Program-made: the position numbers and the translations under genes
Notes under the pieces: generated by a model
The model's input: the letters and a program-made list of their open reading frames with translations, nothing else
Databases searched by the model: none
What the model was told of the DNA's origin: nothing
Virus record (IMG/VR): IMGVR_UViG_3300037882_003354
Coordinates: 124,001-188,000 of that record
Reading direction: 5' to 3' (one strand)
Length of the DNA stretch: 64,000 bases
Shown: positions 1 through 11,514 of the stretch, piece after piece
How the letters are laid out: the number at the start of each line of letters is the position of its first letter
Numbering within the stretch: position 1 is the first letter of the stretch

Positions 1-17
1 TTGAACCTGGAATCCTG

Positions 18-242
18 ATGAATCACAGTCCCATTCTGCAGTGGACAGCCACTGCCGTGACACTGCTGGGCGCCATGCTCACAGCGGCAGCTCTGGATCC
101 CTGGAATGTCTACTGTCTGAATGCCGGCAGTGGCCTGTGGCTCATCTGGGCCTGGCGGGTGCGCAGCCGCAGCTTGATCGTGGTCAACGCTGGCCTGGTG
201 CTCATATACATGGCAGGCCTGGTCCGAGCCTTCTTTGCTTGA
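18..242 (+). CDS. small membrane protein
   Basis: 74 aa, three hydrophobic segments; TGA stop lies inside the next TTGACA. Confidence 0.7.
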   Translation: MNHSPILQWTATAVTLLGAMLTAAALDPWNVYCLNAGSGLWLIWAWRVRSRSLIVVNAGLVLIYMAGLVRAFFA

Positions 243-266
243 CAATCTGGATCATTGTGCTATAGT
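239..266 (+). promoter_or_regulatory. early sigma70-type promoter P1
   Basis: TTGACA-16-TATAGT with TGn extended -10. Confidence 0.8.
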
Positions 267-296
267 ACTGACATCGCAACACAACAAGGAAGACAC

Positions 297-554
297 ATGA
301 AGAAAGACCTTATGACCCGTGACCTGAAACGGCATGCCCTGGTACAAGACACCGTGACTGGCTTTGTGCAGGCTCAGTACGAATTGCATGACAGCCATGC
401 CTACGCCACCGGCTACATGGAGAGCCTGCTGGTGCAGATCTTGACCTATCACGTGACTGAGGCCAACCGTGCCCGATTCCTGGATGAGCTGGCTCGCAGC
501 GCCGACAAGGCTCGGGTGGAGAGCACCTACAGGGCATTGACCCTGGCTGCGTGA
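297..554 (+). CDS. hypothetical early protein
   Basis: AAGGA SD before ATG 297; open ORF. Confidence 0.75.
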   Translation: MKKDLMTRDLKRHALVQDTVTGFVQAQYELHDSHAYATGYMESLLVQILTYHVTEANRARFLDELARSADKARVESTYRALTLAA

Positions 555-733
555 TGACTGACTACCAGTTCTGCATGATCCTCCGCGATGGCGGCCATCG
601 GATCATCACCGTGGGGGCGGAGAATCAGGATCACGCCCATGACATGTTCCATCGCATCTACGGCACGGACCTGCCGGCCTTCCTGTACCAGCACCCGCCG
701 GCCTTTGTTCAAGAACTGGTTGACAACTCCTGA
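551..733 (+). CDS. hypothetical early protein
   Basis: 60 aa ORF coupled to the upstream stop (GTGATG). Confidence 0.65.
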   Translation: MMTDYQFCMILRDGGHRIITVGAENQDHAHDMFHRIYGTDLPAFLYQHPPAFVQELVDNS

Positions 734-747
734 ACTCCTGCTATAAT
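720..747 (+). promoter_or_regulatory. early promoter P2
   Basis: TTGACA-16-TATAAT. Confidence 0.85.
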
Positions 748-780
748 ACATTCATCACAACGCAACAGGGGAAGCAGAGC

Positions 781-1053
781 ATGGCCTACGTATTGATCAA
801 TCGCAACCAGAAGGGACGGCAAGAAGCCATCCGCACCTATGCCACCTACAAGGGTGCCCTGATTGGCATGCGCGTGAGCAACCGCAACGCCGGCTGGACT
901 CGTAGCAGCCGCTGCTACCTGGGCTACTGCGCCATGGAATGGGGTCATGATGCCGCTGGCGACTACGAGTACGCACCCTACGCCATCATGCACGAGTTTG
1001 ATTACAAGATGCGGCATCAGCCTCTTGACACGGTGCGTGGGGCCGCTGTATAA
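781..1053 (+). CDS. hypothetical early protein
   Basis: AGGGG SD, 90 aa ORF. Confidence 0.75.
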   Translation: MAYVLINRNQKGRQEAIRTYATYKGALIGMRVSNRNAGWTRSSRCYLGYCAMEWGHDAAGDYEYAPYAIMHEFDYKMRHQPLDTVRGAAV

Positions 1054-1054
1054 T
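1025..1054 (+). promoter_or_regulatory. early promoter P3
   Basis: TTGACA-18-TATAAT-acacac-ATG. Confidence 0.85.
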
Positions 1055-1060
1055 ACACAC

Positions 1061-1255
1061 ATGAAGACACAACAGGAGCAACAGATGAATGACTTTAGAC
1101 GGGCCATGCGAGTCATGTGCTCTGCATGTCAAGAATTTCACCAGGTGAAGGATGTGAAATTCATTGACATCCAGGAAGATTATGCCGGCAGGGATCTGAT
1201 GACCTTTGAGTGCTCGGTGACCAGCACCCAACAAAAGGCCTACGTGCTGGGCTGA
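1061..1255 (+). CDS. small zinc-ribbon-like protein (dual start 1061/1085)
   Basis: CSAC...FEC motif; ATG at predicted +1 and in-frame SD-led ATG. Confidence 0.7.
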   Translation: MKTQQEQQMNDFRRAMRVMCSACQEFHQVKDVKFIDIQEDYAGRDLMTFECSVTSTQQKAYVLG

Positions 1256-1259
1256 TCAC

Positions 1260-1287
1260 TTGACAATTGGTGCCATGATGTTATAAT
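1260..1287 (+). promoter_or_regulatory. early promoter P4
   Basis: TTGACA-16-TATAAT-acacac-ATG. Confidence 0.85.
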
Positions 1288-1293
1288 ACACAC

Positions 1294-1518
1294 ATGATGA
1301 CACAACTGGAGCAACACATGAATGAATTCGTAGCATCGGCAGTGGATCGGGTGGAGAGCAAGTTCCTGGTCCACTGCGACACTGATGTTCCAGCCGAGAT
1401 CCTGGCTGATGTCCTGCACTATTGCCGGGTCAAAGGCATTGACTTCGACAACGAGCTGCGCCTGGCTCGTGACTACGTGGAGGCAGAACTGGCTGAGTTT
1501 TTCGGTGTAGGTGCTTGA
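1294..1518 (+). CDS. hypothetical early protein (dual start 1294/1318)
   Basis: 74 aa; ILADVLHYC...GIDFD helical motif; stop inside next TTGACA. Confidence 0.75.
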   Translation: MMTQLEQHMNEFVASAVDRVESKFLVHCDTDVPAEILADVLHYCRVKGIDFDNELRLARDYVEAELAEFFGVGA

Positions 1519-1542
1519 CAACCGGAGCGATCCTGCTATAAT
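1515..1542 (+). promoter_or_regulatory. early promoter P5
   Basis: TTGACA-16-TATAAT-gctgac-ATG. Confidence 0.85.
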
Positions 1543-1548
1543 GCTGAC

Positions 1549-1875
1549 ATGGACAACGCAAAGGAGCAGCAAATGGAACTGAACACACGGCAGGTACGGG
1601 CAATTGCATTGAAGGCAACGGACAAGCCCTTCCACACTTGGACGGACAAGACCAGCGACTACGATGACGCACGACGCAGCGTGGTGTGGAGTTTTTATGG
1701 CACGGGTGGGGCACAGGCATTGTTTGACCTGTTGCAGGCAGAGTTTGCACGGCTGGGCGTGACGAATAAGTTGACGCTCACGGGCACTGCCTATGAATAC
1801 GTGCGCGTGATTGCACCCCTGGGCAATCTGCCTGCCCTGCGCTGGCAGGACTTGCCTGAAGTTTATCCCATCTGA
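1549..1875 (+). CDS. hypothetical early protein (dual start 1549/1573)
   Basis: 108 aa ORF, AAGGAG internal SD. Confidence 0.75.
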   Translation: MDNAKEQQMELNTRQVRAIALKATDKPFHTWTDKTSDYDDARRSVVWSFYGTGGAQALFDLLQAEFARLGVTNKLTLTGTAYEYVRVIAPLGNLPALRWQDLPEVYPI

Positions 1876-1889
1876 TGGTGGCAGGGTGC

Positions 1890-1918
1890 TTGACAACACC
1901 AGCACCCTGCGCTATAAT
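1890..1918 (+). promoter_or_regulatory. early promoter P6 with inverted repeat across -35
   Basis: TTGACA-17-TATAAT; GCAGGGTGCT 1881-1890 / AGCACCCTGC 1901-1910. Confidence 0.85.
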
Positions 1919-1924
1919 ACACAC

Positions 1925-2149
1925 ATGACGACGCAACAACAGGAGAGGCAAATGACGGTGACCCAATACCTGATGACCCAGGGCTGCGGCCAGGAAGAGA
2001 TCCGCACCATCCTGGAAGAGATGGAGTATCACAGGCAGCAGGAGCTCTGGGTGTCCCAGGACCCCCACGGCGATGAGGGCATGGACTGGGATGCGTTTGA
2101 TGACGCGCAGGCCGAAAGGCTCTGGCCAGAAGCAGAAGATTTTGCTTGA
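1925..2149 (+). CDS. small acidic protein (dual start 1925/1952)
   Basis: MTTQQQERQM start; D/E-rich; stop inside next TTGACA. Confidence 0.7.
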   Translation: MTTQQQERQMTVTQYLMTQGCGQEEIRTILEEMEYHRQQELWVSQDPHGDEGMDWDAFDDAQAERLWPEAEDFA

Positions 2150-2173
2150 CATTCCAAACGAATGCGTTATAAT
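2146..2173 (+). promoter_or_regulatory. early promoter P7
   Basis: TTGACA-16-TATAAT. Confidence 0.85.
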
Positions 2174-2206
2174 GCAGACTTACACACAACGAAAGGCGAC
2201 ACTAAC

Positions 2207-3085
2207 ATGGCAAAGGCAGCAATGAAGAACCCCAGCAAAGGCACCAGCACCGTGCTGGAATTTGACACCGACGCTATCAAAAGGCGTGAACAAGAAGTGG
2301 CACTGGAGAGCGATGAGGACATCATCAATCGCCTGCGCGAGCGCTTTGACATCCTGACTGACATGACCAAGGCGGTCAAAGAAGGCCATGTGCGGGCCAT
2401 GATTGTAAGCGGTCCACCGGGCGTGGGCAAGAGCTACGGCGTGGAGGCTGTGCTGGAGAAGGACGACTTGTTCAACAAGTTGGCAGAACGCAAGCCCAAG
2501 TACGAGATCGTCAAGGGCGCCATGAGCAGCATTGGACTCTACGCCAAGCTCTACGAGTTCAGCAAGGCTGGCAACGTGGTGGTGTTCGACGACTGCGACA
2601 GCATCCTGATGGAGGACCTGAGCCTGAACATCCTGAAGGGTGCACTGGACAGCAGCAGCCGCCGCTTCATCAGCTGGAACACCGACAGCCGCATCCTGCG
2701 CGCCGAGGGCATTCCCGACCGCTTTGAGTTCTGTGCAGGTGCCATCTTCATCACCAACATCAAGTTTGAGCACGTGCGCAGCAAGAAGCTCAAGGACCAC
2801 CTGGATGCACTGGAGTCGCGCTGCCACTACATTGACCTGCAGATGGACACCACACGCGAGAAGATCCTGCGCATCCGGCAGATCATCAACGATGGCATGC
2901 TGGAGAAGTACGAGTTCAGTCAGCCGGACCTGGTGCGTGACGAGCTGGTGGAGTTCGTGGTGGACAACCAGGACCGACTGCGTGAGCTGAGCCTGCGCAT
3001 GGTGCTCAAGTTGGCGGACCTGCGCAAGAGCTTCCCCACCAATTGGCAAGCCATGGCCAAGACCACTTGTATGCGTCGGTCATGA
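2207..3085 (+). CDS. AAA+ family P-loop ATPase
   Basis: Walker A GPPGVGKS, Walker B VVVFDDCD, sensor FITN, arginine-finger-like ALESRC. Confidence 0.85.
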   Translation: MAKAAMKNPSKGTSTVLEFDTDAIKRREQEVALESDEDIINRLRERFDILTDMTKAVKEGHVRAMIVSGPPGVGKSYGVEAVLEKDDLFNKLAERKPKYEIVKGAMSSIGLYAKLYEFSKAGNVVVFDDCDSILMEDLSLNILKGALDSSSRRFISWNTDSRILRAEGIPDRFEFCAGAIFITNIKFEHVRSKKLKDHLDALESRCHYIDLQMDTTREKILRIRQIINDGMLEKYEFSQPDLVRDELVEFVVDNQDRLRELSLRMVLKLADLRKSFPTNWQAMAKTTCMRRS

Positions 3086-3360
3086 TCAACCAACTGCTCT
3101 ACGCCACCTGGGTGGAGCGCCTGGTGGCGCTCACCGCCCAGGCCCTGGTGCTGTGGTGGGTGGGTGCCCAACTGGAGGGAGATCACTTCTGGGCCTTGTG
3201 CAGCATCCTGGCCATGACCCTGGTGTTGGAGTACTTGGCCTGGCAACAGGGCATTGCACAAGGCATGGCCATCTACGCGGGACTGACACCACAGCAACAG
3301 GCTGACGTCAGTGCCATCTTAAACTCAACCGACGACACAACTGAAGAAGAACAAAAATGA
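3082..3360 (+). CDS. membrane protein
   Basis: ATGA overlap with the ATPase stop; two hydrophobic helices. Confidence 0.7.
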   Translation: MINQLLYATWVERLVALTAQALVLWWVGAQLEGDHFWALCSILAMTLVLEYLAWQQGIAQGMAIYAGLTPQQQADVSAILNSTDDTTEEEQK

Positions 3361-3587
3361 ACAACCCATGCACCTGGATTGGCCCATACGGACTAAAGTG
3401 TACATGTGACCGACCGGCCATGCCCACCCGCAACTATTGTGAGGATCACATCTGGTTGATCTATCAGAAGGGCACCAACCTACGCCGACGACACAAGGAC
3501 ATTCGAGTGGCTAATGCCGTGTGGGACTGGGAGAGCGAGTTCAACTCAGCGGTGCAGGAACTGGTGGAAGAAGGCTTCGAAGTTTAA
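3357..3587 (+). CDS. small Cys/His-containing protein
   Basis: CTW..C.C..NYCEDH; ATGA overlap. Confidence 0.7.
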   Translation: MNNPCTWIGPYGLKCTCDRPAMPTRNYCEDHIWLIYQKGTNLRRRHKDIRVANAVWDWESEFNSAVQELVEEGFEV

Positions 3588-3595
3588 AAGATTGC

Positions 3596-3623
3596 TTGAC
3601 ATCTCTTGTGATTGTGCTATACT
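3596..3623 (+). promoter_or_regulatory. early promoter P8
   Basis: TTGACA-16-TATACT. Confidence 0.85.
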
Positions 3624-3653
3624 ACATTCATCAACAACGCAAAGGAAGACGAA

Positions 3654-4268
3654 ATGCCTAACTGGTGCAACAATCGAGTGACACTGACCCACACAGACCC
3701 TGTGATGATTGACCGTGCTGTCAAGGCCTACCAACAGGGTCGCTTGCTGAACGAGTTCATCCCTGTGCCACAGGAACTCATGGACACCCAGGCCAGCCCG
3801 GGCACCCAGGAGGAGGCCCTGGTGGCCCAGCGCACAGCCAATACAGAGAAGTTTGGTTTCGCCGACTGGTATACCTTCTGTCTGACCAACTGGGGCACCA
3901 AGTGGGATGTGGGTGGCGATGGTGAGTTCATCGAGCAAGACTCGCCCAATGAGGTCGAACTGGCTTTTGACAGCGCCTGGGCACCACCCATTGCGGCCTA
4001 CGAGCAACTGGAGGGCCTGGGTTTTGAGATTGAAGCCTATTACTTTGAACCCGGCATGGCCTTCTGCGGCGTCTGGACCAATGAGTTCGGTGACGACTAC
4101 TGTGAATACACAGACATGACACCGCAAGAGATCCGTGATCAGATGCCCGAGATTGACGAACGCTTCTGCATCAGCGACATGCTGGAGGAGTGGGCACGAG
4201 AAGAGGCTGAGAATGAAGAGAACCTGGAGATTGACCTGGACGGCGGCTTGAGCGCCACCAACGAATAA
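3654..4268 (+). CDS. DUF1281/YubB ferredoxin-like domain protein
   Basis: MPNWCNN, W..C..NWGTKWD and FDSAWAPP motifs characteristic of this family. Confidence 0.75.
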   Translation: MPNWCNNRVTLTHTDPVMIDRAVKAYQQGRLLNEFIPVPQELMDTQASPGTQEEALVAQRTANTEKFGFADWYTFCLTNWGTKWDVGGDGEFIEQDSPNEVELAFDSAWAPPIAAYEQLEGLGFEIEAYYFEPGMAFCGVWTNEFGDDYCEYTDMTPQEIRDQMPEIDERFCISDMLEEWAREEAENEENLEIDLDGGLSATNE

Positions 4269-4271
4269 AGA

Positions 4272-4300
4272 TTGACAGGGGCTCAGTCCCCTGTTATAAT
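4272..4300 (+). promoter_or_regulatory. early promoter P9 with hairpin in spacer
   Basis: TTGACA-17-TATAAT; ACAGGGG 4275-4281 / CCCCTGT 4288-4294. Confidence 0.85.
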
Positions 4301-4329
4301 ACGACATCAACACAACAAAAGGAAACAAG

Positions 4330-4719
4330 ATGGCAACTCGCGGCGTAATTGGGGTCATGTATGGTGAAGTCTGCAAGAGCATTTATGTGCACTGGGATTC
4401 GTATCTGGGCGGTGTGGGTGCCACGCTGCTGGAGAACTACGGACGAGTGGGTGCTAGCGAACTCATTGCCTGCGGCAACGTCAGCAGCCTGGGTGCCACC
4501 ATTCCGGACACCCGGTTCTTTGACCAAGAAACCGAGTGCCTGACTGCCAACAACTTTGAAGAGTTCCTGGATCAGTGGGGCGACTCCTGGATAGAGTACA
4601 TGTACATCATGGGCATGGATGAGCAGTGGTATGTGGTGCGTGACAACCGCAGCCTGCAACTGTTGAGCGAGGCCCTGGCGGCCGAACGGGCCTTGGACAA
4701 CATGAAGGAGCAAGCATAA
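4330..4719 (+). CDS. conserved phage hypothetical protein
   Basis: MATRxxIG...SIYVHWDSY motif typical of a widespread phage early family; AAAGGA SD. Confidence 0.75.
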   Translation: MATRGVIGVMYGEVCKSIYVHWDSYLGGVGATLLENYGRVGASELIACGNVSSLGATIPDTRFFDQETECLTANNFEEFLDQWGDSWIEYMYIMGMDEQWYVVRDNRSLQLLSEALAAERALDNMKEQA

Positions 4720-4931
4720 TGGGTCTGGAAAAGGTGGTGCTCAGGGACTTGGAAGATGAATCGGTCTATGACGTCTATTGGTCATCAGGCCGCTTGTACT
4801 ACATGAACGAATGGGACTTGCCCACCATTCGTCAGGTGCTCAGGGATCGTTACCCATTGGTGAACCAGGACATCCTGGTGGCTGATACAGATGCTGTCAT
4901 GTTCGATCCCTATGCAACTGTCAACAGCTAG
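4719..4931 (+). CDS. hypothetical protein
   Basis: TAATG coupling, AAGGAG SD. Confidence 0.7.
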   Translation: MGLEKVVLRDLEDESVYDVYWSSGRLYYMNEWDLPTIRQVLRDRYPLVNQDILVADTDAVMFDPYATVNS

Positions 4932-4969
4932 ACACCCTAAAACCCCGCTGCAAGGGTGGGCAGAATCGG

Positions 4970-4998
4970 TTGACAAGACTGAATTTACATGTTAAACT
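4970..4998 (+). promoter_or_regulatory. early promoter P10
   Basis: TTGACA-17-TAAACT. Confidence 0.65.
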
Positions 4999-5049
4999 AA
5001 TGACACTGGACCAATGATGGTTCGGTATTACACACACAAAGGAAATTTT

Positions 5050-5451
5050 ATGACTGACAAGACTTATACCCACGCTGGCGTGAGCACTTTTGAAGGCGTG
5101 ATCAAGCCGCGCTTCACCTGCAATCCCAATCGTGTGAAGACCATGATCAAGGAAGGGCACACTGCCATCGACTTCCTGGAGCTCTTGAAGCCCATGACCA
5201 CGCAGGAGGCCATCGCTTACTTGCTCAAGATCAATTACGGTGACGACGCCACTCGTGCGGCACTCACGGCAGCCCTGGACCGTCGCGTGCCGGCTGTCAA
5301 GGCACCCAAGACCGTCCGGGTCAAGGCTGAGAAGAAGGTCAAGCCCACCTTGTCGTCCATCGCTGCACGTGGCCCCCGCAATCCTGTGACCCAGGTCACC
5401 CGAGCTGAGGTTGAAGCCCAGCTGGCCGATCTGGACGACGCGCCCTTCTAA
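5050..5451 (+). CDS. basic hypothetical protein
   Basis: AAAGGA SD; K/A/P-rich C-half, ends DLDDAPF (SSB-like acidic tip). Confidence 0.75.
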   Translation: MTDKTYTHAGVSTFEGVIKPRFTCNPNRVKTMIKEGHTAIDFLELLKPMTTQEAIAYLLKINYGDDATRAALTAALDRRVPAVKAPKTVRVKAEKKVKPTLSSIAARGPRNPVTQVTRAEVEAQLADLDDAPF

Positions 5452-5456
5452 GCACC

Positions 5457-5669
5457 ATGAGCCAACTGCTGTTCGTTGGCCGTCCCTGGACGGTGTTTGA
5501 CGCCCACAACCGTCAGCACCGCCAGTGGTTCGCGGAGTTCCAGCGCCGCCGCTCCTGGGGCTCCTGTCCTGTCAGGTTCATCATCCCGGACGACGCTGGG
5601 GACTTATTGAGTATGATCCAGGGCCGGTTAATAGAATATTATACCAATAAAGAGTTTAAAATCAGTTGA
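5457..5669 (+). CDS. hypothetical protein
   Basis: 70 aa, FD..N..HR..F..F....SWG.CP motif; stop inside next TTGACA. Confidence 0.75.
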   Translation: MSQLLFVGRPWTVFDAHNRQHRQWFAEFQRRRSWGSCPVRFIIPDDAGDLLSMIQGRLIEYYTNKEFKIS

Positions 5670-5720
5670 CATCCTGACAGATACTGTATACCATAGTATC
5701 AACTGTTTGAATACAGTATC
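5666..5720 (+). promoter_or_regulatory. promoter P11 with candidate operator
   Basis: TTGACA-17-TACCAT; perfect IR GATACTGTAT 5680-5689 / ATACAGTATC 5711-5720. Confidence 0.65.
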
Positions 5721-5736
5721 ACATAAGGATATCAAA

Positions 5737-5982: not shown

Positions 5983-6200
5983 TGCATGACATCACAGTCG
6001 CCGTGCAGTTGACTGGGCAGGATCTGGAGTTCCTGGACTCGGTGTTGAAGTGTGTGATTGACACCAACACTGAGCAGGAGGCTGAGACACTGACCCTGCT
6101 GCGTGCCAGACTGGCCCATGCCCAGGCAGAGTTGATGAGTGCCAGGGCCATGGCCCTGGCATTAAATACTCAGTCTTATATTAAAGGAGATAGATTATGA
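5982..6200 (+). CDS. hypothetical protein
   Basis: TGATG coupling; 72 aa. Confidence 0.6.
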   Translation: MHDITVAVQLTGQDLEFLDSVLKCVIDTNTEQEAETLTLLRARLAHAQAELMSARAMALALNTQSYIKGDRL

Positions 6201-6430
6201 GCAATTTAGATACTAAAGTATCAGAAGTCACCGCGGAAGTGGTAGTCAGTCAGTTGACTGGCAAGAAGTGGTACCTGTCCAAGACACTCTGGGCCAACGT
6301 GGGCATGATTGCAGCCATCTGGTTCCAGGGCCACTTTGGAGTTGCCATGAGCGTGGAACTGCAGGCCCTAATCATGGCTGGTGTCAACATGGCACTGCGC
6401 ACCATCACCAAGGAACCTGTGGTCTGGTGA
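6197..6430 (+). CDS. small membrane protein, possibly holin-like
   Basis: GKKWYLSKTLWAN followed by two TM helices; AAGGAG SD; late-type TAAATA at 6163-6168. Confidence 0.55.
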   Translation: MSNLDTKVSEVTAEVVVSQLTGKKWYLSKTLWANVGMIAAIWFQGHFGVAMSVELQALIMAGVNMALRTITKEPVVW

Positions 6431-6431
6431 G

Positions 6432-6460
6432 TTGACAAGAACCGCATCACCTGCTATACT
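6432..6460 (+). promoter_or_regulatory. early promoter P12
   Basis: TTGACA-17-TATACT. Confidence 0.8.
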
Positions 6461-6488
6461 GACTCCACATTAACACATGGAGTTGGAA

Positions 6489-6575
6489 ATGCAGCAGGTG
6501 AAATTGGTTCTGGGTTGGATCGCCGTCATTGTCCTGTCAGCCTTCATGGGTGTTTTACTCGCCTGGAGGGGTTGA
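6489..6575 (+). CDS. 28 aa single-TM micro-protein (not in ORF track)
   Basis: MQQVKLVLGWIAVIVLSAFMGVLLAWRG; GGAG SD; own promoter; stop inside next TTGACA. Confidence 0.65.
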   Translation: MQQVKLVLGWIAVIVLSAFMGVLLAWRG

Positions 6576-6600
6576 CAGGACTCTTCTCTGACTGTAGAAT
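6572..6600 (+). promoter_or_regulatory. early promoter P13
   Basis: TTGACA-17-TAGAAT-acacac-ATG. Confidence 0.8.
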
Positions 6601-6606
6601 ACACAC

Positions 6607-6807
6607 ATGAAATACAACATCCAGCAAGAGACCACCCAGTGGGCCAGCCCCACCACTCCCAATCATGTGTACATTTTTGAAGGCACGGTGAGCGGCCGTG
6701 GGGCCAAGGCCATTGGCTACGTCAAGGCTGGCACCACTCACGTGCAGCGATTCCGTGTGCCCATGATGATGGACACTCGCGGCAGGACCTTTGTTGCCTT
6801 GAAATGA
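6607..6807 (+). CDS. hypothetical protein, leaderless
   Basis: ATG 6 nt after -10, no SD, no nearby alternative start. Confidence 0.75.
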   Translation: MKYNIQQETTQWASPTTPNHVYIFEGTVSGRGAKAIGYVKAGTTHVQRFRVPMMMDTRGRTFVALK

Positions 6808-6992
6808 GAAACAGCAGATACGGTTTTGACACCCTGCCAGCCATCCCATTCACCAGTGCGCCCTGGGTGCCTGTGGGTGAAGCCACTGAGATCACCTGGG
6901 CTCAGGCCTACTCACAGTGGAGTCAGGCGCAACGGGTGCCCGTGACACCACAGGACTTCTTGAAGGCCTTCAGGCTTGACTCCGACAGATGA
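6804..6992 (+). CDS. hypothetical protein
   Basis: ATGA overlap; 62 aa. Confidence 0.6.
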   Translation: MRNSRYGFDTLPAIPFTSAPWVPVGEATEITWAQAYSQWSQAQRVPVTPQDFLKAFRLDSDR

Positions 6993-7004
6993 TGCTGCTA
7001 GAAT
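6976..7004 (+). promoter_or_regulatory. early promoter P14
   Basis: TTGACT-17-TAGAAT. Confidence 0.75.
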
Positions 7005-7030
7005 AGATGCAAGACAACAGGAGTAGACGA

Positions 7031-7177
7031 ATGCCATACACATTGATCACTCCACTGGGACAGATTTACACTTTCTATCTCCAGGTGACGGCCCAGACAT
7101 TCCAGCAGGCCTACGGTGGTCACATCCTGACTGCCGATATGCTGCAGACTGAAGCCCAGCCCATACTCATCAACTAA
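7031..7177 (+). CDS. 48 aa hypothetical protein (not in ORF track)
   Basis: CAGGAG SD; MPYTLITPLGQIYTFY...FQQAYGGHI. Confidence 0.65.
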   Translation: MPYTLITPLGQIYTFYLQVTAQTFQQAYGGHILTADMLQTEAQPILIN

Positions 7178-7188
7178 AAGGAAACCCT

Positions 7189-7434
7189 ATGAAAAACTCC
7201 ACTCTTGCCGCCTGGCGCACCGCCGGCTGGGTCTTGGCCATGGTGGCCTTGTGCCTGATTGCTCACCTGACATTCACCCTGGTGCCCGCCCAGGTGCTGC
7301 TCAACAGCCTGTATGCCCTGATGGGCATTGGCGCCGTGGTGGGCCTGTATCATATAGCACTGGCTCAGATTGAGTACCAGCAGGTGGCACGTGACATCGC
7401 CCAGCGTGAAAAGTTCCCCAACATCCAGGAATAA
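7189..7434 (+). CDS. membrane protein
   Basis: AAAGGA SD; two TM helices. Confidence 0.7.
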   Translation: MKNSTLAAWRTAGWVLAMVALCLIAHLTFTLVPAQVLLNSLYALMGIGAVVGLYHIALAQIEYQQVARDIAQREKFPNIQE

Positions 7435-7437
7435 GTC

Positions 7438-7465
7438 TTGACAAATCGTCAGAAGTCGCTATAAT
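7438..7465 (+). promoter_or_regulatory. early promoter P15
   Basis: TTGACA-16-TATAAT. Confidence 0.85.
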
Positions 7466-7472
7466 GGATCAC

Positions 7473-7718
7473 ATGACGACGCAACAACAGGAGCAGAACA
7501 TGGGCTACACCGTAATCGCAGACAAGTATCAAATGGACCAGATGCGCGACAATTACGGTCCACGCCGGGGCTTGGAAGGGCCTTTCAACTTCAGCGGCCG
7601 GGTTCTGTATTACGACGTCCAGGAGGGCAAGTACTATGACCCTCGCAGCGATTTTTATGTGGAGCAGGATGAAATGAACCTGATCAACGCCCGGCTCATG
7701 AACACGCTCAGGGGCTGA
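7473..7718 (+). CDS. conserved phage hypothetical protein (dual start 7473/7500)
   Basis: GLEGPF...GRVLYYD..EGKYYDP..DFY motif. Confidence 0.75.
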   Translation: MTTQQQEQNMGYTVIADKYQMDQMRDNYGPRRGLEGPFNFSGRVLYYDVQEGKYYDPRSDFYVEQDEMNLINARLMNTLRG

Positions 7719-7719
7719 C

Positions 7720-8070
7720 ATGAGCCGGAACACTCGCATCCATGCACACCGCATGATCCAGGTGATCAAGACTGGTGCCCTGGACACACAGAGCACTGAG
7801 TTTGACGCATGGCAGACGCCCACCACAGCCACCTGGCACATCCTGATCCCTGTGGACACGGCCGCCCGACTGCAGGCCTATCGTGACTGGGTCATGAGCG
7901 CCTGCCAGGATGAGACCGAGAACGTCTACGCTGAGGACGACTTGTTCCAGGCGGGCGAGCCCGTGAGCACGGTCATCGTCAATCACGGGCGTGATCACAT
8001 CGCCCAATTGGATGAGTGGCTGGCGCTCTTGGAGCAGACAGGCTGGGAAGTGTCAGTGGATGCCTGGTAA
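7720..8070 (+). CDS. hypothetical protein
   Basis: 116 aa ORF immediately after the previous stop. Confidence 0.7.
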   Translation: MSRNTRIHAHRMIQVIKTGALDTQSTEFDAWQTPTTATWHILIPVDTAARLQAYRDWVMSACQDETENVYAEDDLFQAGEPVSTVIVNHGRDHIAQLDEWLALLEQTGWEVSVDAW

Positions 8071-8073
8071 GGC

Positions 8074-8101
8074 TTGACACGGCCTGAGAAGTCGCTATAA
8101 T
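8074..8101 (+). promoter_or_regulatory. early promoter P16
   Basis: TTGACA-16-TATAAT-gaacac-ATG. Confidence 0.85.
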
Positions 8102-8107
8102 GAACAC

Positions 8108-8212
8108 ATGAAGACAAAAGACCTACTGTTTGAAATTGAAGTCATCCTCATGCTCATCGTGGGCTTTGGATTGTTTTTCGCACTCCTTTACATGGCAGGA
8201 ATGACACTATGA
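8108..8212 (+). CDS. 34 aa leaderless single-TM micro-protein (not in ORF track)
   Basis: MKTKDLLFEIEVILMLIVGFGLFFALLYMAGMTL; ATG at predicted +1; ATGA overlap with next gene. Confidence 0.65.
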   Translation: MKTKDLLFEIEVILMLIVGFGLFFALLYMAGMTL

Positions 8213-8445
8213 GCAAGATGAGTGAACTATTTTACGACCTCCTGGAGATGCTGGAACTGGGCCGCACTGATTCAGAAATCAGCCTGGCCACCGGCTTCCC
8301 GCTGGAAGCCATTGCCATCTGGCGGGCAGATGCTGAACTGCGCCCTGAGAGCGCCAGTGAAGAGAGCGACTGGCAAACCGACACCGGGCCTGGTGATGAA
8401 GAGGATGGCTGGGACGATGACGAATGGTTCATCCAGGCCGAGTGA
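8209..8445 (+). CDS. highly acidic small protein
   Basis: short HTH-like N-half, D/E/W-rich tail. Confidence 0.7.
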   Translation: MSKMSELFYDLLEMLELGRTDSEISLATGFPLEAIAIWRADAELRPESASEESDWQTDTGPGDEEDGWDDDEWFIQAE

Positions 8446-8450
8446 CAGAC

Positions 8451-8768
8451 ATGCGGCCACCACCCCAGAACGTGCCCACCCTGACTGACGTGGTGCATGA
8501 GCCACCACCCAGGTGGGTGGTGCATCAGACTCTGAGCGACCACCAGCTGCCCAAACTCAGCTGCATCATGCTGCACCTGCGACTGCATGAACAGTATTAT
8601 CAGGTGCAGCTGAGCACCTCACGTGGCATCTGGGCCATGATTCGCCTGGCCCTGGTGCCCCTGTCGGAGATTCAACAGGCCAACGACCTGTTGCGCATGA
8701 AGATCCAGAAGTACGGTGACATCCGAGGATATCGCCTGCTGGTGGCGGGTTGCAGGAAAAACACTTGA
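8451..8768 (+). CDS. hypothetical protein
   Basis: fills the gap to the next promoter; stop inside TTGACA. Confidence 0.6.
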   Translation: MRPPPQNVPTLTDVVHEPPPRWVVHQTLSDHQLPKLSCIMLHLRLHEQYYQVQLSTSRGIWAMIRLALVPLSEIQQANDLLRMKIQKYGDIRGYRLLVAGCRKNT

Positions 8769-8792
8769 CATCCTGACGGAAGTCGCTATAAT
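8765..8792 (+). promoter_or_regulatory. early promoter P17
   Basis: TTGACA-16-TATAAT-gatcac-ATG. Confidence 0.85.
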
Positions 8793-8798
8793 GATCAC

Positions 8799-9239
8799 AT
8801 GACGACGCAACAGGAGCACCAGATGGCTAAATTGAACAAAGAACAGCGCGAAGCCCTGGCCGTGGCCGATGCCCAGGCTGAACAGGCCCGGCTGCAGTCC
8901 CTGGTGGACTCCTATCCCCAGCGCCTGATGGACGCTCTGAGCCGGGCCCTGGCCCAGGGTGCTCATGCGGATGTGGATGCCCCGGGCATGTTCTTCAGTG
9001 TGGTGTTCCGTGACTCAGGGCGTGTGATCAATGTGTCCTATGCATGCGGCGGGCCCATGGATGAGGAGTATCTGCAGGACCTGCTGTTCGAGGTGGCCCA
9101 CCTGGAGTTCCTGCGTGAGGAAGAACGCCGCCTGGAACAGGTGCGAGTCACGGCCCTGGCCAAACTGTCGGATGAAGAAATCAAGGTCTTGGGGCTCCAG
9201 TGCGCCGCCCGGGGCACCTGGAACCGCGACTGCTATTGA
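8799..9239 (+). CDS. hypothetical protein (dual start 8799/8823)
   Basis: coiled coil ending ALAKLSDEEIKVLGL. Confidence 0.75.
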   Translation: MTTQQEHQMAKLNKEQREALAVADAQAEQARLQSLVDSYPQRLMDALSRALAQGAHADVDAPGMFFSVVFRDSGRVINVSYACGGPMDEEYLQDLLFEVAHLEFLREEERRLEQVRVTALAKLSDEEIKVLGLQCAARGTWNRDCY

Positions 9240-9253
9240 GCCGGGAGCACCTG

Positions 9254-9469
9254 ATGTACGCACTATTCGCTGGAGATGTATTCTACCCACAGGGCGGCTG
9301 GCGGGACCTGCAGGGAGTGTACCAGACCCTGACACAGGCACAGGAGGCCCTGGCTCGCATACAATCTGAGCCTGATGAGCACGGTGACGTGCCCGATGCC
9401 TTCGAATGGGCTCACGTGGTGGACCTGCGCCGTGCCCATCTGGTGTGGGACTGGCACCGTCAGGATTGA
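9254..9469 (+). CDS. conserved phage hypothetical protein
   Basis: GGGAG SD; LFAG..FYP.GGW.D...WAHVVD motif. Confidence 0.7.
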   Translation: MYALFAGDVFYPQGGWRDLQGVYQTLTQAQEALARIQSEPDEHGDVPDAFEWAHVVDLRRAHLVWDWHRQD

Positions 9470-9493
9470 CATTCAGCACAGGGTGTGTATAAT
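9466..9493 (+). promoter_or_regulatory. early promoter P18
   Basis: TTGACA-16-TATAAT-gcactc-ATG. Confidence 0.85.
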
Positions 9494-9499
9494 GCACTC

Positions 9500-9578
9500 A
9501 TGCGTTCGAACAGTCTGACTGGGGGTGGACGGCGAGGCTGGGCCACATGATGGCCCTCCCTTTCCCTGAAAGAAACAG
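9500..9578 (+). ncRNA. candidate small RNA or 16-aa leaderless peptide
   Basis: strong promoter followed by only 79 nt before the next promoter; hairpin GGGCCA-catga-TGGCCC. Confidence 0.35.
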
Positions 9579-9606
9579 TTGACAAGACGGCACAAGGCGC
9601 TAGAAT
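9579..9606 (+). promoter_or_regulatory. early promoter P19
   Basis: TTGACA-16-TAGAAT. Confidence 0.8.
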
Positions 9607-9613
9607 ACATGAC

Positions 9614-9820
9614 ATGACGACGCAACTTCAACTGGAGCAGAACATGGACATGAACCAACGCCGCCAACTGGCCCTCCGCGCAGCCGCAGCCTTCCGTGAA
9701 GCCTGGGCGCTCATGGACCAGGCCATTGGCTGGGACGCCAGCGGCGCCCTGGCTGAGGATGGCCTGGTCACCATCATCCACGAACTGGAGCGGCAGGAGT
9801 TCGTGGGAGTGGCGGAATAA
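9614..9820 (+). CDS. hypothetical protein (dual start 9614/9644)
   Basis: 68 aa ORF, GGAG internal SD. Confidence 0.7.
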   Translation: MTTQLQLEQNMDMNQRRQLALRAAAAFREAWALMDQAIGWDASGALAEDGLVTIIHELERQEFVGVAE

Positions 9821-9827
9821 GGAGCAC

Positions 9828-10058
9828 ATGATGAAGCGTCAATACAATAAATGGAGTGAGATCCTGAAGGGTGATCTATCCGCCCAGGATCGTCGAAAGA
9901 TTCGGAACTCTGTCACACTATACGTTCAGACCCCCAAGGGCTGGAACAGCGTTGCCGTATGCTATACCCGACAAGAAGCTGAAGAGTTCAAAGAACGAAT
10001 TGTTCGGGGCAGGTTCACACTCAAATACGAGCACGAAAAAGTCTTTAAAATTGGTTGA
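9828..10058 (+). CDS. basic hypothetical protein
   Basis: TAAGGAG SD; visibly more AT-rich than neighbours; stop inside TTGACA. Confidence 0.7.
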   Translation: MMKRQYNKWSEILKGDLSAQDRRKIRNSVTLYVQTPKGWNSVAVCYTRQEAEEFKERIVRGRFTLKYEHEKVFKIG

Positions 10059-10082
10059 CATTCCGGCAGAAGGCGGTATAAT
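10055..10082 (+). promoter_or_regulatory. early promoter P20
   Basis: TTGACA-16-TATAAT-acacac-ATG. Confidence 0.85.
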
Positions 10083-10088
10083 ACACAC

Positions 10089-10532
10089 ATGACGACGCAA
10101 CAGGAGCCAACAATGACTGAAGCCACTTTCCCCAGCTGGGACGACATGACGGACCTGCAGCAGGCCCAGTGCATGTTCTGGGACATGTACAAGGACGCCC
10201 ACGGCTTCCGTCCCCGTGGCGTGGACACCAGCGCCTGGACCCTGGAGGACTTCAGCCGGGAGTTTGACTTCCTGGGGCGGGTGATTGAGCAGCAGGAACA
10301 GGAGCGCATCCTGAAGGAGCAGCAGGCCATCACCCACTTTGAGCGCCGCCTGCAGGAGTTGATGAAACTGGGCGCCCAGGACCGTGAGGACGCCATCCGC
10401 TGGTGCCTGGATGCGGACGATGCCCGGGACCTGGAGGACTTGGCCTGGCGCAACGAACTGCCCTGGAACTACCTCCGGGTTCAGCCCCTGCGTGGTGACG
10501 GCCGCTACGACGCTGAAGTCAGCGACGAATAA
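10089..10532 (+). CDS. conserved phage hypothetical protein (dual start 10089/10113)
   Basis: WDMYKDAHGFRPR motif. Confidence 0.8.
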   Translation: MTTQQEPTMTEATFPSWDDMTDLQQAQCMFWDMYKDAHGFRPRGVDTSAWTLEDFSREFDFLGRVIEQQEQERILKEQQAITHFERRLQELMKLGAQDREDAIRWCLDADDARDLEDLAWRNELPWNYLRVQPLRGDGRYDAEVSDE

Positions 10533-10536
10533 AGGC

Positions 10537-10564
10537 TTGACATTCCGGCTGCGGCCGCTATAAT
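10537..10564 (+). promoter_or_regulatory. early promoter P21
   Basis: TTGACA-16-TATAAT-acacac-ATG. Confidence 0.85.
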
Positions 10565-10570
10565 ACACAC

Positions 10571-11488
10571 ATGACGACAACTACACAGGAACGCAACATG
10601 AAGACAGGCATCATCGTATTCTCCGAAGGCAAGTGGCAGGGTCGTGACGAACAAGGCCGCATCTTGCTCACCAGCGTGGACCAGGACCGTGTGCGCCGTG
10701 TGCTCATGAAAAAGCACGAGTGCACCAACGTCCAGATCCTGGATCAAGCCCAGTCAGAGGCTGCCGAGACCCAGAGCCAGTGGCCCATCAATCAGCGTTT
10801 CGACTTCCTGAGCCAGCTGGTGCGCATGGTGGGACAAGGCAACGCGGTGAGCTTGATTGTCACGGGTCCCGGCGGCCTGGGCAAGACCCACACGGTGCGT
10901 GAGGGACTCCTGGCATGTGGCCTCAAAGAAGCCACCGTGGACGGCGTGAATGGCGAAGGCACCTTCAAGATCATCAAGGGCTACAGCACCGCCAAGGGCT
11001 TGTACCGCGAGCTGTATCAGAACCAGGACAGCGTGTTGGTGTTTGACGACTGCGATGATGTGCTCAAGGATCCCACTGCACTCAACCTGCTGAAAGGCGC
11101 ACTGGATTCGTACGACAAGCGCATCATCAGCTGGAATGCAGACATGCGTGACGACGACCTGGAGCGCAGTTTCCAGTTCAACGGCCGCGTGATCTTCATC
11201 AGCAATCTCAACCGCGATCGCATGGACACGGCACTCAAGACCCGAGCCTACTGCGTGGACCTGGCCATGAGCTTGAGCCAGAAGATCGAGCGCATGCAGG
11301 TGCTGGCTGCGTCGGATGACTTCATGCCACGTGCCCGCCGTGAGCACAAGGCCGACGCCCTGGCTCTGATCCAAGAGCTGGGCCCACGCTGCCGTGAAGT
11401 CAGCCTGCGCACCCTGCAGGCCGTCACCCGCATCCGTGCTGCGGGCGGCGCCTGGCGTGAACTGGCAGAGTACACCCTGACCAATTGA
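10571..11488 (+). CDS. AAA+ family P-loop ATPase, paralog of 2207..3085 (dual start 10571/10598)
   Basis: GPGGLGKT, VLVFDDCD, LNLLKGALDS, RIISWN, FISN, REVSLR. Confidence 0.85.
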   Translation: MTTTTQERNMKTGIIVFSEGKWQGRDEQGRILLTSVDQDRVRRVLMKKHECTNVQILDQAQSEAAETQSQWPINQRFDFLSQLVRMVGQGNAVSLIVTGPGGLGKTHTVREGLLACGLKEATVDGVNGEGTFKIIKGYSTAKGLYRELYQNQDSVLVFDDCDDVLKDPTALNLLKGALDSYDKRIISWNADMRDDDLERSFQFNGRVIFISNLNRDRMDTALKTRAYCVDLAMSLSQKIERMQVLAASDDFMPRARREHKADALALIQELGPRCREVSLRTLQAVTRIRAAGGAWRELAEYTLTN

Positions 11489-11514
11489 CACACCAGGGCT
11501 CCTGCCCTTATAAT
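11485..11514 (+). promoter_or_regulatory. early promoter P22
   Basis: TTGACA-18-TATAAT-gcattc-ATG; IR CAGGGCTCCTG 11494-11504 / CAGGAGCCCTG 11530-11540. Confidence 0.8.

Follow-up and report, generated by a model that had tools for sequence, protein, structure and literature searches.

A shuffling promoter-gene cassette array in a freshwater jumbo phage

Why would a phage place a near-perfect bacterial promoter before small early-type genes over many kilobases, so tightly that genes end inside the next promoter? This arrangement is found in the 64,000-nucleotide stretch analysed here (hereafter the window), positions 124,001 to 188,000 of IMG/VR record IMGVR_UViG_3300037882_003354, a complete 322.5-kb freshwater jumbo phage distantly related to PA5oct and Rak2. 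A first-pass annotation had reported 22 co-oriented promoters at 239-11514, with nine upstream genes ending on the TGA of TTGACA. It proposed that each promoter acts as a recombination joint supplying a stop to the upstream gene and a promoter, start and ribosome-binding site to the downstream gene, so that any captured fragment is expressed, and it cited the repeated PeSL-type early-promoter elements of RB49-like T4 phages, which promote shuffling of early genes. It also proposed that promoter density may titrate host RNA polymerase. We confirmed the observation in full, whereas the interpretation was partly supported, the recombination-joint idea largely so.

A dense array of co-oriented promoters

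A promoter scan found 22 sigma70-type sites on the + strand between 239 and 11514, of which 14 match the TTGACA-N16-18-TATAAT consensus at 12/12 positions, five at 11/12 and three at 10/12. Only 3 weak sites lie on the - strand. In contrast, dinucleotide shuffles gave 6.5 +/- 3.1 sites for both strands at the laxer threshold of 9/12, and no comparable cluster occurs in the rest of the window. The window part of the array (1..12255, + strand) contains 36 small genes, numbered here with the prefix g. The array begins about 4.9 kb upstream of the window, at genome position 119,073, giving about 33 promoters in 16.4 kb (genome 119-136 kb) and about 55 small, mostly orphan genes. Promoters occur nowhere else at this density. 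GC1/GC2/GC3 is about 0.60/0.41/0.72 across the array, and almost every ORF shows this pattern, indicating that these ORFs look coding.

All nine reported stops are correct. ORFs end at 242, 1518, 2149, 5669, 6575, 8768, 9469, 10058 and 11488, and the corresponding -35 hexamers start at 239, 1515, 2146, 5666, 6572, 8765, 9466, 10055 and 11485. Furthermore, three more upstream genes end deeper in the next promoter, at 733 and 6992 in the spacer and at 1053 on the TAA of TATAAT, and two more -35 stops and five spacer stops lie in the part of the array upstream of the window. The feature is general in related phage contigs. Of 911 TTGACA promoters with an upstream ORF there, 178 (19.5%) have that ORF stop exactly on the -35 TGA, and of the 378 ORFs still open at the -35, 47% use that TGA against 33% expected (p = 2e-8). 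Within the window alone, however, 9/22 is not significantly above the one-third ceiling expected from random frames. What is unusual in this window is the extreme packing, not a frame bias.

The first promoters of the window are P239 (239..266, TTGACA-16-TATAGT, type A leader), whose upstream ORF is 18-242, P720 (720..747, 12/12, type B leader) and P1025 (1025..1054, 12/12, type C). They are followed by P1260 (1260..1287, 12/12, type C), P1515 (1515..1542, 12/12) and P1890 (1890..1918, 12/12), where a hairpin spans the -35 (z = -4.0). P2146 (2146..2173, 12/12) drives the block g29-g31, in which g29 (2207..3085) encodes a weak AAA-like P-loop ATPase (phrog_1250). P3596 (3596..3623, 11/12) has a type B leader, P4272 (4272..4300, 12/12) bears a PeSL-like GGGG...CCCC hairpin inside its spacer (z = -3.5), and P4970 (4970..4998, 10/12) has a long leader. 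P5666 (5666..5694, 10/12, -10 TACCAT) is overlapped by inverted repeats and lies upstream of the HTH_39 gene. Further along lie P6432 (6432..6460, 11/12), P6572 (6572..6600, 11/12), P6976 (6976..7004, 10/12), P7438 (7438..7465, 12/12), P8074 (8074..8101, 12/12) and P8765 (8765..8792, 12/12). P9466 (9466..9493, 12/12) is followed by only a 16-codon ORF before P9579 (9579..9606, 11/12). The last three are P10055 (10055..10082, 12/12), P10537 (10537..10564, 12/12) and P11485 (11485..11514, 12/12). The gene that stops on the -35 of P11485 is g55 (10598..11488), an AAA-like paralog of g29 (31% identity, phrog_1250), and the last gene of the array, g56 (11542..12255), encodes a SprT-like metalloprotease-domain protein. 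The only good + strand terminator-like hairpin with a T-run downstream of the array lies at 12579..12600 and is the likely common 3' end of the array transcripts.

Gene order and breakpoints in relatives

To test whether gene gain and loss breakpoints map inside the promoter elements, as the first-pass annotation had suggested, we compared the array with its relatives. More than 594 IMG/VR contigs encode the g29 protein, the conserved anchor of homologous arrays, at 75-83% identity, and all 80 loci that were fetched have dense promoter arrays. Neighbours separated by a promoter in the window are adjacent in these relatives in 5/72 co-occurrences, while promoter-less neighbours are adjacent in 52/56 (Fisher p = 5e-25). 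Moreover, genes 32/33/35/41/45/54 lie on the opposite side of the AAA gene in 182/186 cases. Among the relatives, we found 36 clean indels, many with 12-52-nt overlaps of the flanking alignments. Junction sequences show the inserted gene flanked by two promoters with the same spacer, or by repeats of the leader and Shine-Dalgarno (SD) site. Of 25 indels inside arrays, 21 have one end and 10 have both ends in a cassette, against 7.3 and 0.6 under random placement. However, a null in which only whole-gene indels survive selection would also put most breakpoints at gene boundaries, about 60% of which carry promoters, and the random-placement statistics therefore overstate the case.

No relative in IMG/VR is close enough to align the window's array at the DNA level outside the AAA gene. 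Breakpoints in the window itself rest on a single comparison with assembled contigs (Logan) of 3 independent lake DNA runs and 1 RNA library. Homology ends at 6437/6440, 0-3 nt after the -35 of P6432, and resumes at 6600, at the -10 of P6572. The cassette g43-g44 (7031..7434) is skipped promoter-to-promoter (6980->7458, from the -35 of P6976 to the spacer end of P7438) in one contig of the RNA library, although the match on the shorter side of this joint is only 22 nt. Breakpoints also fall at 7479 and 7489 in the leader of P7438, but the joint 7479->10534 is probably repeat-induced. Two joints run from a leader to the next start codon. The first, 8116->8209, skips g47 (8108..8212), which is absent from relatives in 3 lake runs. 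The second, 8811->9254, starts in the leader of P8765 and skips g50 (8823..9239, 138 aa), which is absent in one lake variant and is flanked by GGAGCACC(A/T)GATG repeats. The joint 9822->10069 skips g53 (9828..10058, 76 aa), absent from relatives in 2 runs, and ends mid-spacer of P10055, where the relatives have a different -35 half. The inserted g53 carries its own TTGACA, which also provides its stop codon, as the first-pass annotation predicted. Other breakpoints fall at 10076, at the spacer/-10 boundary of P10055, and at 10533, beside P10537. Both g47 and g53 are read as recent insertions, with a GC3 of 0.51 against an array mean of 0.72.

In total, 11 of 17 breakpoints fall in promoter/leader cassettes that cover 11.3% of the stretch (p = 2.5e-7). 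The six others lie outside promoter cassettes: three at promoter-less SD, start or stop sites, one at the promoter-less g45/g46 junction and two inside genes. No evidence of mini-circles was obtained. Furthermore, the cassette does not systematically close all three reading frames (11/31 against 8.2 +/- 2.3 in shuffles).

An ATG 6-7 nt after the -10 box

The remark that the cassette supplies a start understated a real feature, which is the new element of this work: many cassettes place an ATG 6-7 nt after the -10 box. In the window, 13 of 14 leader ATGs are in frame and open with the SD-led ATG, as at P1025, P1260 (24 nt), P1515, P1890 (27 nt), P7438 (27 nt), P8765, P9579 (7 nt after the -10, 30 nt from the SD-led start), P10537 (27 nt) and P11485 (21 nt). 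Since most leaders in the window are exactly 30 nt long, this count partly reflects one inherited length. In independent IMG/VR promoters with an ATG 5-8 nt after the -10, 19/22 and 42/46 (61/68 together) are in frame, whereas the same distance is uniform mod 3 when no 5' ATG is present (169/134/170 and 108/90/106).

Two genes of the window have no SD. The ATG of g41 (6607..6807, 66 aa), driven by P6572, lies 6 nt after the -10, and its homologs in four relatives (designated L192, L201, L203 and L209) have the same predicted leaderless arrangement. The other is g47, a 34-aa membrane ORF driven by P8074. In the IMG/VR contigs, 178 promoters are followed by a 5'-ATG ORF of 30 or more codons with no SD, and the motif TTGACA-N16-18-TATAATACACACATGA occurs in more than 119 contigs. 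Outside the array, a conserved 332-aa gene on the - strand (16809..17841) has its ATG 5 nt after a TTGACA-17-TAAAAT promoter (17841-17813). Four ORFs of 327-335 aa in relatives (L140, L147, L154 and L159) start the same way and have similar N-termini, although orthology was judged by eye rather than by alignment. These observations suggest leaderless expression outside the array as well.

Interpretation and known systems

We interpret the region, with reasonable confidence, as the hyperplastic early-gene block of the phage, in which about 33 copies of a 55-65-nt regulatory cassette are interspersed in one orientation. Each cassette has a consensus -35, a 16-18-nt spacer, a consensus -10, a conserved A/C-rich leader, an AGGAG SD and an ATG. 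Our analysis shows that the cassettes are dispersed direct repeats of 60-88% identity falling into three sub-families (repeat families of 38-64 nt), that the upstream stop usually lies within 16 nt of the next promoter or inside it, that the units between promoters keep their internal order but are reshuffled, gained and lost in relatives, and that breakpoints fall inside the cassettes from the -35 to the SD. The mechanism, in contrast, is inferred, as are transcription and translation, which we deduce from sequence alone. Homologous recombination, possibly by the phage's own RecA/UvsX-family recombinase (26781..27839, - strand), which would give it its own means of recombining short repeats, would cross over between cassette copies, although exact runs of about 20-25 nt are short for RecA-type recombination. 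A mid-spacer crossover would leave the -35 half, with the stop, attached to the upstream gene and the -10/leader/SD half attached to the downstream gene, so that every new junction regenerates a working promoter and the incoming gene is expressed. Host sigma70 RNA polymerase would transcribe the array soon after infection and, as there are no internal terminators, transcripts should read through to the terminator near 12.6 kb. In about a third of cassettes, transcription should start on the A of the 5' ATG, giving a leaderless mRNA. This ATG would be either the sole start (g41, g47) or kept in frame with the SD-led ATG, in which case the gene would have two initiation routes and a short MTTQQEQxM-type N-terminal extension.

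The main alternative, which we consider unlikely, is compaction only: ordinary early promoters in a tightly packed genome, where stops overlap the -35 because selection removes spacer DNA and only indels that respect gene boundaries survive, without any special recombinogenic role for the repeats. The lack of frame bias in the window, the lack of systematic three-frame closure, the breakpoints at promoter-less sites or inside genes, and a gene-boundary null that predicts counts similar to those of the 25 array indels all agree with this view. However, crossovers fall inside the 29-nt promoter core (10069, 10076, 7458, and 6440 just after the -35) and not merely somewhere between genes, indels among relatives are flanked by near-identical promoter copies with overlapping alignments, and promoter-separated neighbours are almost never kept together while promoter-less ones almost always are.

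A dedicated site-specific recombinase or nuclease, integron-like or homing-like, is very unlikely. The stereotyped cassette, the one-directional array and the presence of two conserved AAA-like ATPases, an HTH protein and a SprT-like protein of unknown role could fit such a system. Yet breakpoints are spread over the -35, spacer, -10, leader and SD, the same promoter-leaderless module is spread over many unrelated phage contigs, and none of the 14 array proteins scanned, which leave out roughly 40 small ORFs, matched an integrase, transposase or homing-endonuclease family. Titration of host RNA polymerase is even less likely and remains pure speculation, supported only by the density of about 33 near-consensus promoters in 16 kb. 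One infecting genome offers only about 33 sites, which is small next to a bacterial cell's pool of RNA polymerase, and every promoter is followed by a leader, an SD or 5' ATG, and an ORF with coding-type composition, indicating that these promoters are expression signals.

The array works like the PeSL (promoter-early stem-loop) cassettes of T4-type phages RB49/phi1, PST and nt-1 (Arbiol et al. 2010, PMC2839356; Comeau et al. 2014, PMC4122927). In both cases, repeated near-consensus sigma70 early promoters are concentrated in a hyperplastic region full of small orphan genes, insertions, deletions and replacements between relatives are bounded by the cassettes, and the phage has its own recombination machinery. 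PeSL crossovers are mapped between the -10 and the SD or ATG, and similar positions are seen here, but crossovers also occur inside the promoter spacer. The array differs from PeSL in that no stem-loop terminator lies next to the promoter, as only 2-4 of about 33 cassettes have a hairpin, located inside or across the promoter. Nor is there an AT-rich upstream element, and on these two points the array falls outside the PeSL class, although the analogy is apt in mechanism. Furthermore, the upstream stop overlaps the promoter so that cassettes are not transcriptionally insulated, many cassettes carry a 5'-terminal ATG, mini-circles have not been shown, and the phage belongs to a different, PA5oct/Rak2-related lineage.

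Pseudomonas jumbo phage PA5oct (Lood et al. 2020, PMC7318152) is the nearest cultured relative found in the phage collection searched (tail sheath, 38% identity). It relies on host RNA polymerase and has 32 promoters with TTGAC and TATAATA boxes. The passages of that paper found by a term search mention no cassette repeats, shuffling, stop/-35 overlap or leaderless starts, and the word 'leaderless' does not occur in its main text; this comparison rests on the paper and not on the PA5oct genome.

Leaderless mRNAs, such as lambda cI from PRM and those common in Actinobacteria and Deinococcus (Shell et al. 2015, PMC4633059), share a -10 box 6-7 nt upstream of an ATG, the absence of an SD and an ORF that begins at the transcript's 5' end. 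Here, the predicted leaderless ATG is part of a mobile promoter cassette and is often combined with an in-frame SD-led start 21-30 nt downstream on the same mRNA, a dual arrangement for which a limited literature search found no description in phage early genes.

Finally, integron gene-cassette arrays are also one-directional arrays of small, mostly orphan genes with high turnover, in which new genes are expressed on arrival. No integrase, attI or attC sites were found among the 14 array proteins scanned, and in the phage array each unit has its own promoter and junctions are homology-based rather than at a fixed site.

Genomic setting and structure of the promoter array

The single 322,512-bp contig that carries the window at bases 124,001-188,000 is classed in IMG/VR as a complete virus record with direct terminal repeats. 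The rest of the window encodes a tail sheath, a large terminase, a DnaB-type helicase and other phage proteins. The sheath shares 38% identity with that of Pseudomonas jumbo phage PA5oct, 33% with Rak2-like phages and 49-62% with five large IMG/VR contigs. Sequencing runs that contain near-identical 31-mers are lake and freshwater metagenomes from many studies, with some lake runs containing a third of the window's 31-mers. A megablast search of the array against 50,697 phage records returned no match, and Rfam and tRNA scans of the window found nothing.

The first-pass annotation had described 22 co-oriented, near-consensus promoters in this region, with nine upstream genes ending on the TGA of the next -35 box, and this observation was confirmed. 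A consensus scan found 22 promoter-like sites on the + strand between 239 and 11514, of which 14 are perfect TTGACA-N16-18-TATAAT, while shuffles gave 6.5 +/- 3.1 sites on both strands at a laxer threshold. Nothing comparable occurs in the other 51 kb of the window. A whole-genome scan revealed that the cluster starts upstream of the window, at genome position 119,073, and ends at 135,485. It contains about 33 sites, all on the + strand, in a block of 55.7% GC within a genome of about 47% GC. All nine stop codons are exactly the TGA of the next TTGACA. Furthermore, three more genes end inside the next promoter, at 733 and 6992 in the spacer and at 1053 on the TAA of TATAAT, and the upstream extension adds two -35 stops and five spacer stops. 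The ORFs show a coding-type GC1/GC2/GC3 of about 0.60/0.41/0.72.

To assess how unusual this overlap is, we examined 1,090 unique TTGACA promoters in related IMG/VR loci, of which 911 have an upstream ORF ending nearby. Of these ORFs, 178 stop exactly on the -35 TGA and most of the others stop 4-16 nt upstream. Among the 378 ORFs still open at the -35, 47% use that TGA against 33% expected (p = 2e-8). The overlap is therefore a general property of these phages, and reflects extreme packing with a modest preference for the frame that adds no extra residues. However, the cassette does not close all three reading frames more often than chance (11/31 against 8.2 +/- 2.3 in shuffles), and that idea was rejected.

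Alignment of all sites showed that the promoter is not the only repeated part. Also conserved are a G at -14, the motif ACAnACAT just after the -10, an A/C-rich leader, an AGGAG site, and a start codon most often exactly 30 nt after the -10. Copies are 60-88% identical over 38-64 nt, and three sub-families are visible: type A (TATAGT actgacatYgcaaca), type B (TATAAT acattcatcaacaacgcaaagga) and type C (TATAAT acacacATGACGACGCAACAGGAG). A search of IMG/VR for an exact 26-nt type-C cassette returned no match. Five promoters (7438-7465, 8074-8101, 8765-8792, 9579-9606 and 10055-10082) share the second half of the spacer (gaag[t/g]cg[c/g]) plus the -10, but have unrelated first halves, whereas P10055, P10537 and P2146 (named by the position of their -35) share the first half (ttcc...). 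These mosaic promoters are what mid-spacer crossovers would produce.

We found no + strand terminator-like sites in the array beyond chance, and upstream stops lie within 16 nt of the promoter or inside it, which leaves no room for a terminator upstream of the promoter. Only P1890 and P4272 carry significant hairpins, and these lie within or across the promoter itself. The 20 nt upstream of the -35 are coding and 48.9% AT, against 43.5% for the array, so an AT-rich UP element is absent. The perfect promoter P9466 is followed only by a 16-codon ORF before the next promoter (9466-9578), and a 40-nt piece of this interval (9504-9543) occurs in a different sequence context in lake contigs. A structured small RNA behind P9466 was considered and rejected, as its fold is not better than shuffles. 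The weak promoter P5666 (-10 TACCAT), upstream of the HTH_39 gene (5737-5982), is overlapped within 5660-5720 by a perfect 10-nt inverted repeat GATACTGTAT/ATACAGTATC and by a second 90% pair, an arrangement that looks like an operator for autoregulation.

The first good + strand terminator-like site lies at 12579-12600, in a 1.2-kb stretch following the array (12256-13480) in which we called no gene. This stretch contains 3.7 perfect tandem copies of TCTTCAAATGA (12341-12381), several GGGGCCC-containing repeats, and two copies of a 37-nt motif ending in a T-run (12573-12609 and 12933-12969), the first of which is a terminator-like hairpin. It could be a transcription end zone, an origin or a regulatory region. 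The array (1-12255) also differs in composition from the rest of the window (13000-64000), with a GC3 of 0.72 against 0.53 for structural and replication genes of the same phage. Homologous arrays in relatives have a median GC of 44.7%, and the anchor AAA-like gene g29 has a GC3 of 0.82 although its orthologs sit in AT-richer loci. Adaptation of early genes to host tRNAs or a different gene pool are possible causes.

Gene shuffling and positions of breakpoints

The AAA-like protein encoded by g29 (2207-3085) and its paralog at 10598-11488 are P-loop proteins sharing 31% identity, both assigned to phrog_1250, of unknown function. Relatives of g29 at 75-83% identity occur on more than 594 IMG/VR contigs, and the protein may be a core early function of this phage group. 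We analysed the best 80 loci. All carry dense arrays of the same promoter type, but only a minority of the window's genes recur, and their order differs. Most array genes have no match, or matches in only a few of the 80 loci, and their PHROG hits are all 'unknown function'.

The first-pass annotation had set the position of breakpoints in relatives, and the stability of gene order, as tests of its interpretation. Gene order was not stable. The usual order in relatives is 32, 33, 35-36, 45(41), 18, 14, 29(30)31 (window gene numbers), whereas in the window the block 14...29-31 precedes 32...54. Genes 32/33/35/41/45/54 lie on the other side of g29 in 182 of 186 cases. Window neighbours with a promoter between them are adjacent in relatives in 5 of 72 co-occurrences, while neighbours without one (29-30-31, 35-36) are adjacent in 52 of 56. 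These counts are dominated by a few junctions and by related contigs, so the p-value (Fisher p = 5e-25) is only indicative. Furthermore, the same gene family is found behind different promoter spacers and leaders, or directly behind another gene, in different phages.

An all-against-all blastn of the fetched loci gave 36 unique clean indels, many with 12-52-nt overlaps of the flanking alignments, which is the signature of direct repeats at the ends. In several junctions the inserted gene is bracketed by two promoters that share the same spacer (pairs of loci L112/L104, L195/L196 and L159/L154), and in others by repeats of the leader/SD such as ctaacaaggagca (L143/L163 and L046/L094). Of the 25 indels inside arrays, 21 have at least one end and 10 have both ends within -30 to +80 of a -35 start, whereas random placement predicts 7.3 and 0.6. 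A null that only allows whole-gene indels would give similar counts, because about 60% of gene junctions carry a promoter. The repeat signature, not the count, is the real evidence.

At the DNA level, a blastn search of the array against the 80 related loci aligned only the AAA gene, so breakpoints for the window could not come from IMG/VR. We therefore aligned assembled contigs from three lake DNA runs of different studies and one metatranscriptome library to positions 6001-12000. These contigs are 90-99% identical to the window over long pieces. Homology breaks at 6437/6440, 0-3 nt after the -35 of P6432, and at 6600/6607, at the -10 of P6572, and the g40 cassette between them is replaced. 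A joint at 6980->7458, from the -35 of P6976 to the spacer end of P7438, lacks g43-g44, but comes from one contig with only 22 nt matched on the shorter side. Breakpoints at 7479 and 7489 fall in the leader of P7438. The 8116->8209 joint, with 14 other nt, was seen in three runs and lacks g47, a 34-aa leaderless ORF by prediction. The 8811->9254 joint, with 11 nt, lacks g50, and in that variant the 5' ATG is again 24 nt from, and in frame with, the next start. The 9822->10069 joint, with CTTGACAGCGACTGT, was seen in two runs. Additional breakpoints were found at 10076, at the spacer/-10 boundary of P10055, and at 10471->10533, a C-terminal variant of g54 ending 4 nt before the next -35. The remaining ones are at the promoter-less g45/g46 junction and inside g56. 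A 7479->10534 joint was set aside as probably caused by the shared ATGACGA leader repeat. With regard to excised mini-circles formed by recombination between flanking cassettes, no joints leading back to an earlier position were seen among these contigs.

In the 9822->10069 case, the relatives lack g53 and have a different -35 and first half of the spacer, but share the second half of the spacer, the -10 and the leader with the window. The window's g53 arrived together with the TTGACA that serves as its stop, and the crossover lies in the middle of the promoter. In total, 11 of 17 breakpoints fall in cassettes that cover 11.3% of the stretch (p = 2.5e-7). The two genes missing from the relatives, g47 and g53, are also the only ones with low GC3 (0.51 against 0.72), which fits recent acquisition.

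In-frame ATG codons downstream of the -10 box

In 11 window cassettes, an ATG lies 6-7 nt after the -10, where transcription normally starts, and is in frame with the SD-led ATG 21-30 nt downstream. Counting every ATG in a leader, 13 of 14 are in frame and open. Two genes, g41 and g47, begin at that ATG with no SD, and g41 homologs have the same leaderless arrangement in four other phages. Because most window leaders share one length, with 30-nt leaders dominating, leader-length quantisation partly accounts for the window's own in-frame ATGs, and we turned to independent data. A search for TTGACA-N16-18-TATAATACACACATGA found more than 119 IMG/VR contigs, and in most of them the ATG opens a long ORF with no SD, for example a FEN-like MKYALIDTANTFFRA. 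In relatives, 178 promoters are followed by ORFs of 30 or more codons with no SD.

Across 1,327 unique strong promoters, those with a 5' ATG and an SD-led start within 45 nt are in frame in 19/22 and 42/46 cases (61/68). In contrast, promoters without a 5' ATG show a uniform distribution of the same distance mod 3. This control in relatives rejects general leader-length quantisation as the cause and shows that the in-frame constraint is specific to cassettes with a 5' ATG. It is indirect but strong evidence, from sequence alone, that the 5' ATG is translated, while the coincidence of the transcription start with the A of the start codon is inferred only from the 6-7-nt distance between the -10 and the ATG.

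Candidate leaderless genes also occur outside the array. A conserved 332-aa gene on the - strand at 16809-17807 (region 16809-17841), next to the DnaB-type helicase, starts 5 nt after a TTGACA-17-TAAAAT promoter. Four ORFs of 327-335 aa in relatives start the same way and have similar N-termini, although their orthology was judged by eye rather than by alignment. Outside the window, at genome positions 75,136 (- strand) and 302,543 (+ strand), a perfect promoter is followed 7 nt later by the ATG of a 1,540-codon ORF, a possible leaderless giant gene, and another promoter sits directly upstream of what looks like a tRNA gene.

Interpretation and comparison with known systems

The interpretation offered in the first-pass annotation, that the promoter acts as a recombination joint and that promoter density may also titrate host RNA polymerase, was supported only in part. 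Comparative evidence largely supports the recombination joint. The analysis establishes the repeated cassettes, the reshuffling of the units between promoters and the repeats flanking indels among relatives. That recombination is homologous and uses the phage enzyme, that circles are intermediates, that the promoters fire early from host sigma70 polymerase and that the 5' ATG starts the transcript and is translated are all inferred. The phage encodes a RecA/UvsX-family recombinase on the - strand at 26781-27839 (Pfam RecA, 55.8 bits), while no RecT-type annealase was found in the genome and AAA_24 gave only a sub-threshold hit. We found no evidence for polymerase titration, and each promoter is clearly an expression signal for a gene.

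A more far-reaching reading, which we consider possible but tentative, is that the cassette is a split, self-regenerating expression adaptor with two translation entry points. In this view, crossovers in the spacer let the -35/stop half travel with the upstream gene and the -10/leader half with the downstream gene, and the transcript would begin on an AUG kept in frame with the SD-led AUG. Early phage proteins could then be made both by leaderless initiation on whole 70S ribosomes and by SD-dependent initiation, which could be a hedge against host or phage-induced changes in the translation machinery. Such an adaptor appears to be used across a large, abundant clade of freshwater phages.

These results extend promoter-cassette-mediated modular shuffling, so far documented only in T4-type phages, to an unrelated and very abundant group of uncultured freshwater jumbo phages, represented by more than 594 IMG/VR contigs and occurring in lake metagenomes from many studies. 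They also show that the stem-loop terminator is not needed for the process, and crossovers can lie inside the promoter core, so that each junction would rebuild a promoter. The in-frame 5' ATG gives a simple, testable sequence signature for leaderless translation of phage early genes, and suggests a portable promoter-start module that could be useful for expression design. Finally, the array is a natural catalogue of rapidly exchanged early genes, which are probably host-takeover or anti-defence functions.

With respect to integrons, which have a tyrosine-recombinase integrase plus attI/attC sites at cassette boundaries, none of the 14 array proteins scanned matched an integrase family, and junctions are scattered over the cassette rather than at one site. 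The pattern matches that described for PeSL cassettes of T4-type phages (Arbiol et al., PMC2839356; Comeau et al., PMC4122927), which are consensus early promoters repeated in hyperplastic regions, with crossovers between the -10 and the SD or ATG that delete, insert or replace orphan genes. The array shares with PeSLs a strong sigma70-consensus promoter repeated many times, a location among small, variable orphan genes, and indels and replacements between relatives with crossovers inside the cassettes, the window data for the latter being assembled contigs. Two defining PeSL parts, the stem-loop terminator and the AT-rich upstream region, are absent here. We therefore regard these cassettes as working like PeSLs without being members of that group. 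PeSLs remain the closest known system, to which the array adds a new phage lineage, promoter-internal crossovers, stop/-35 overlap and a predicted leaderless, often dual, start.
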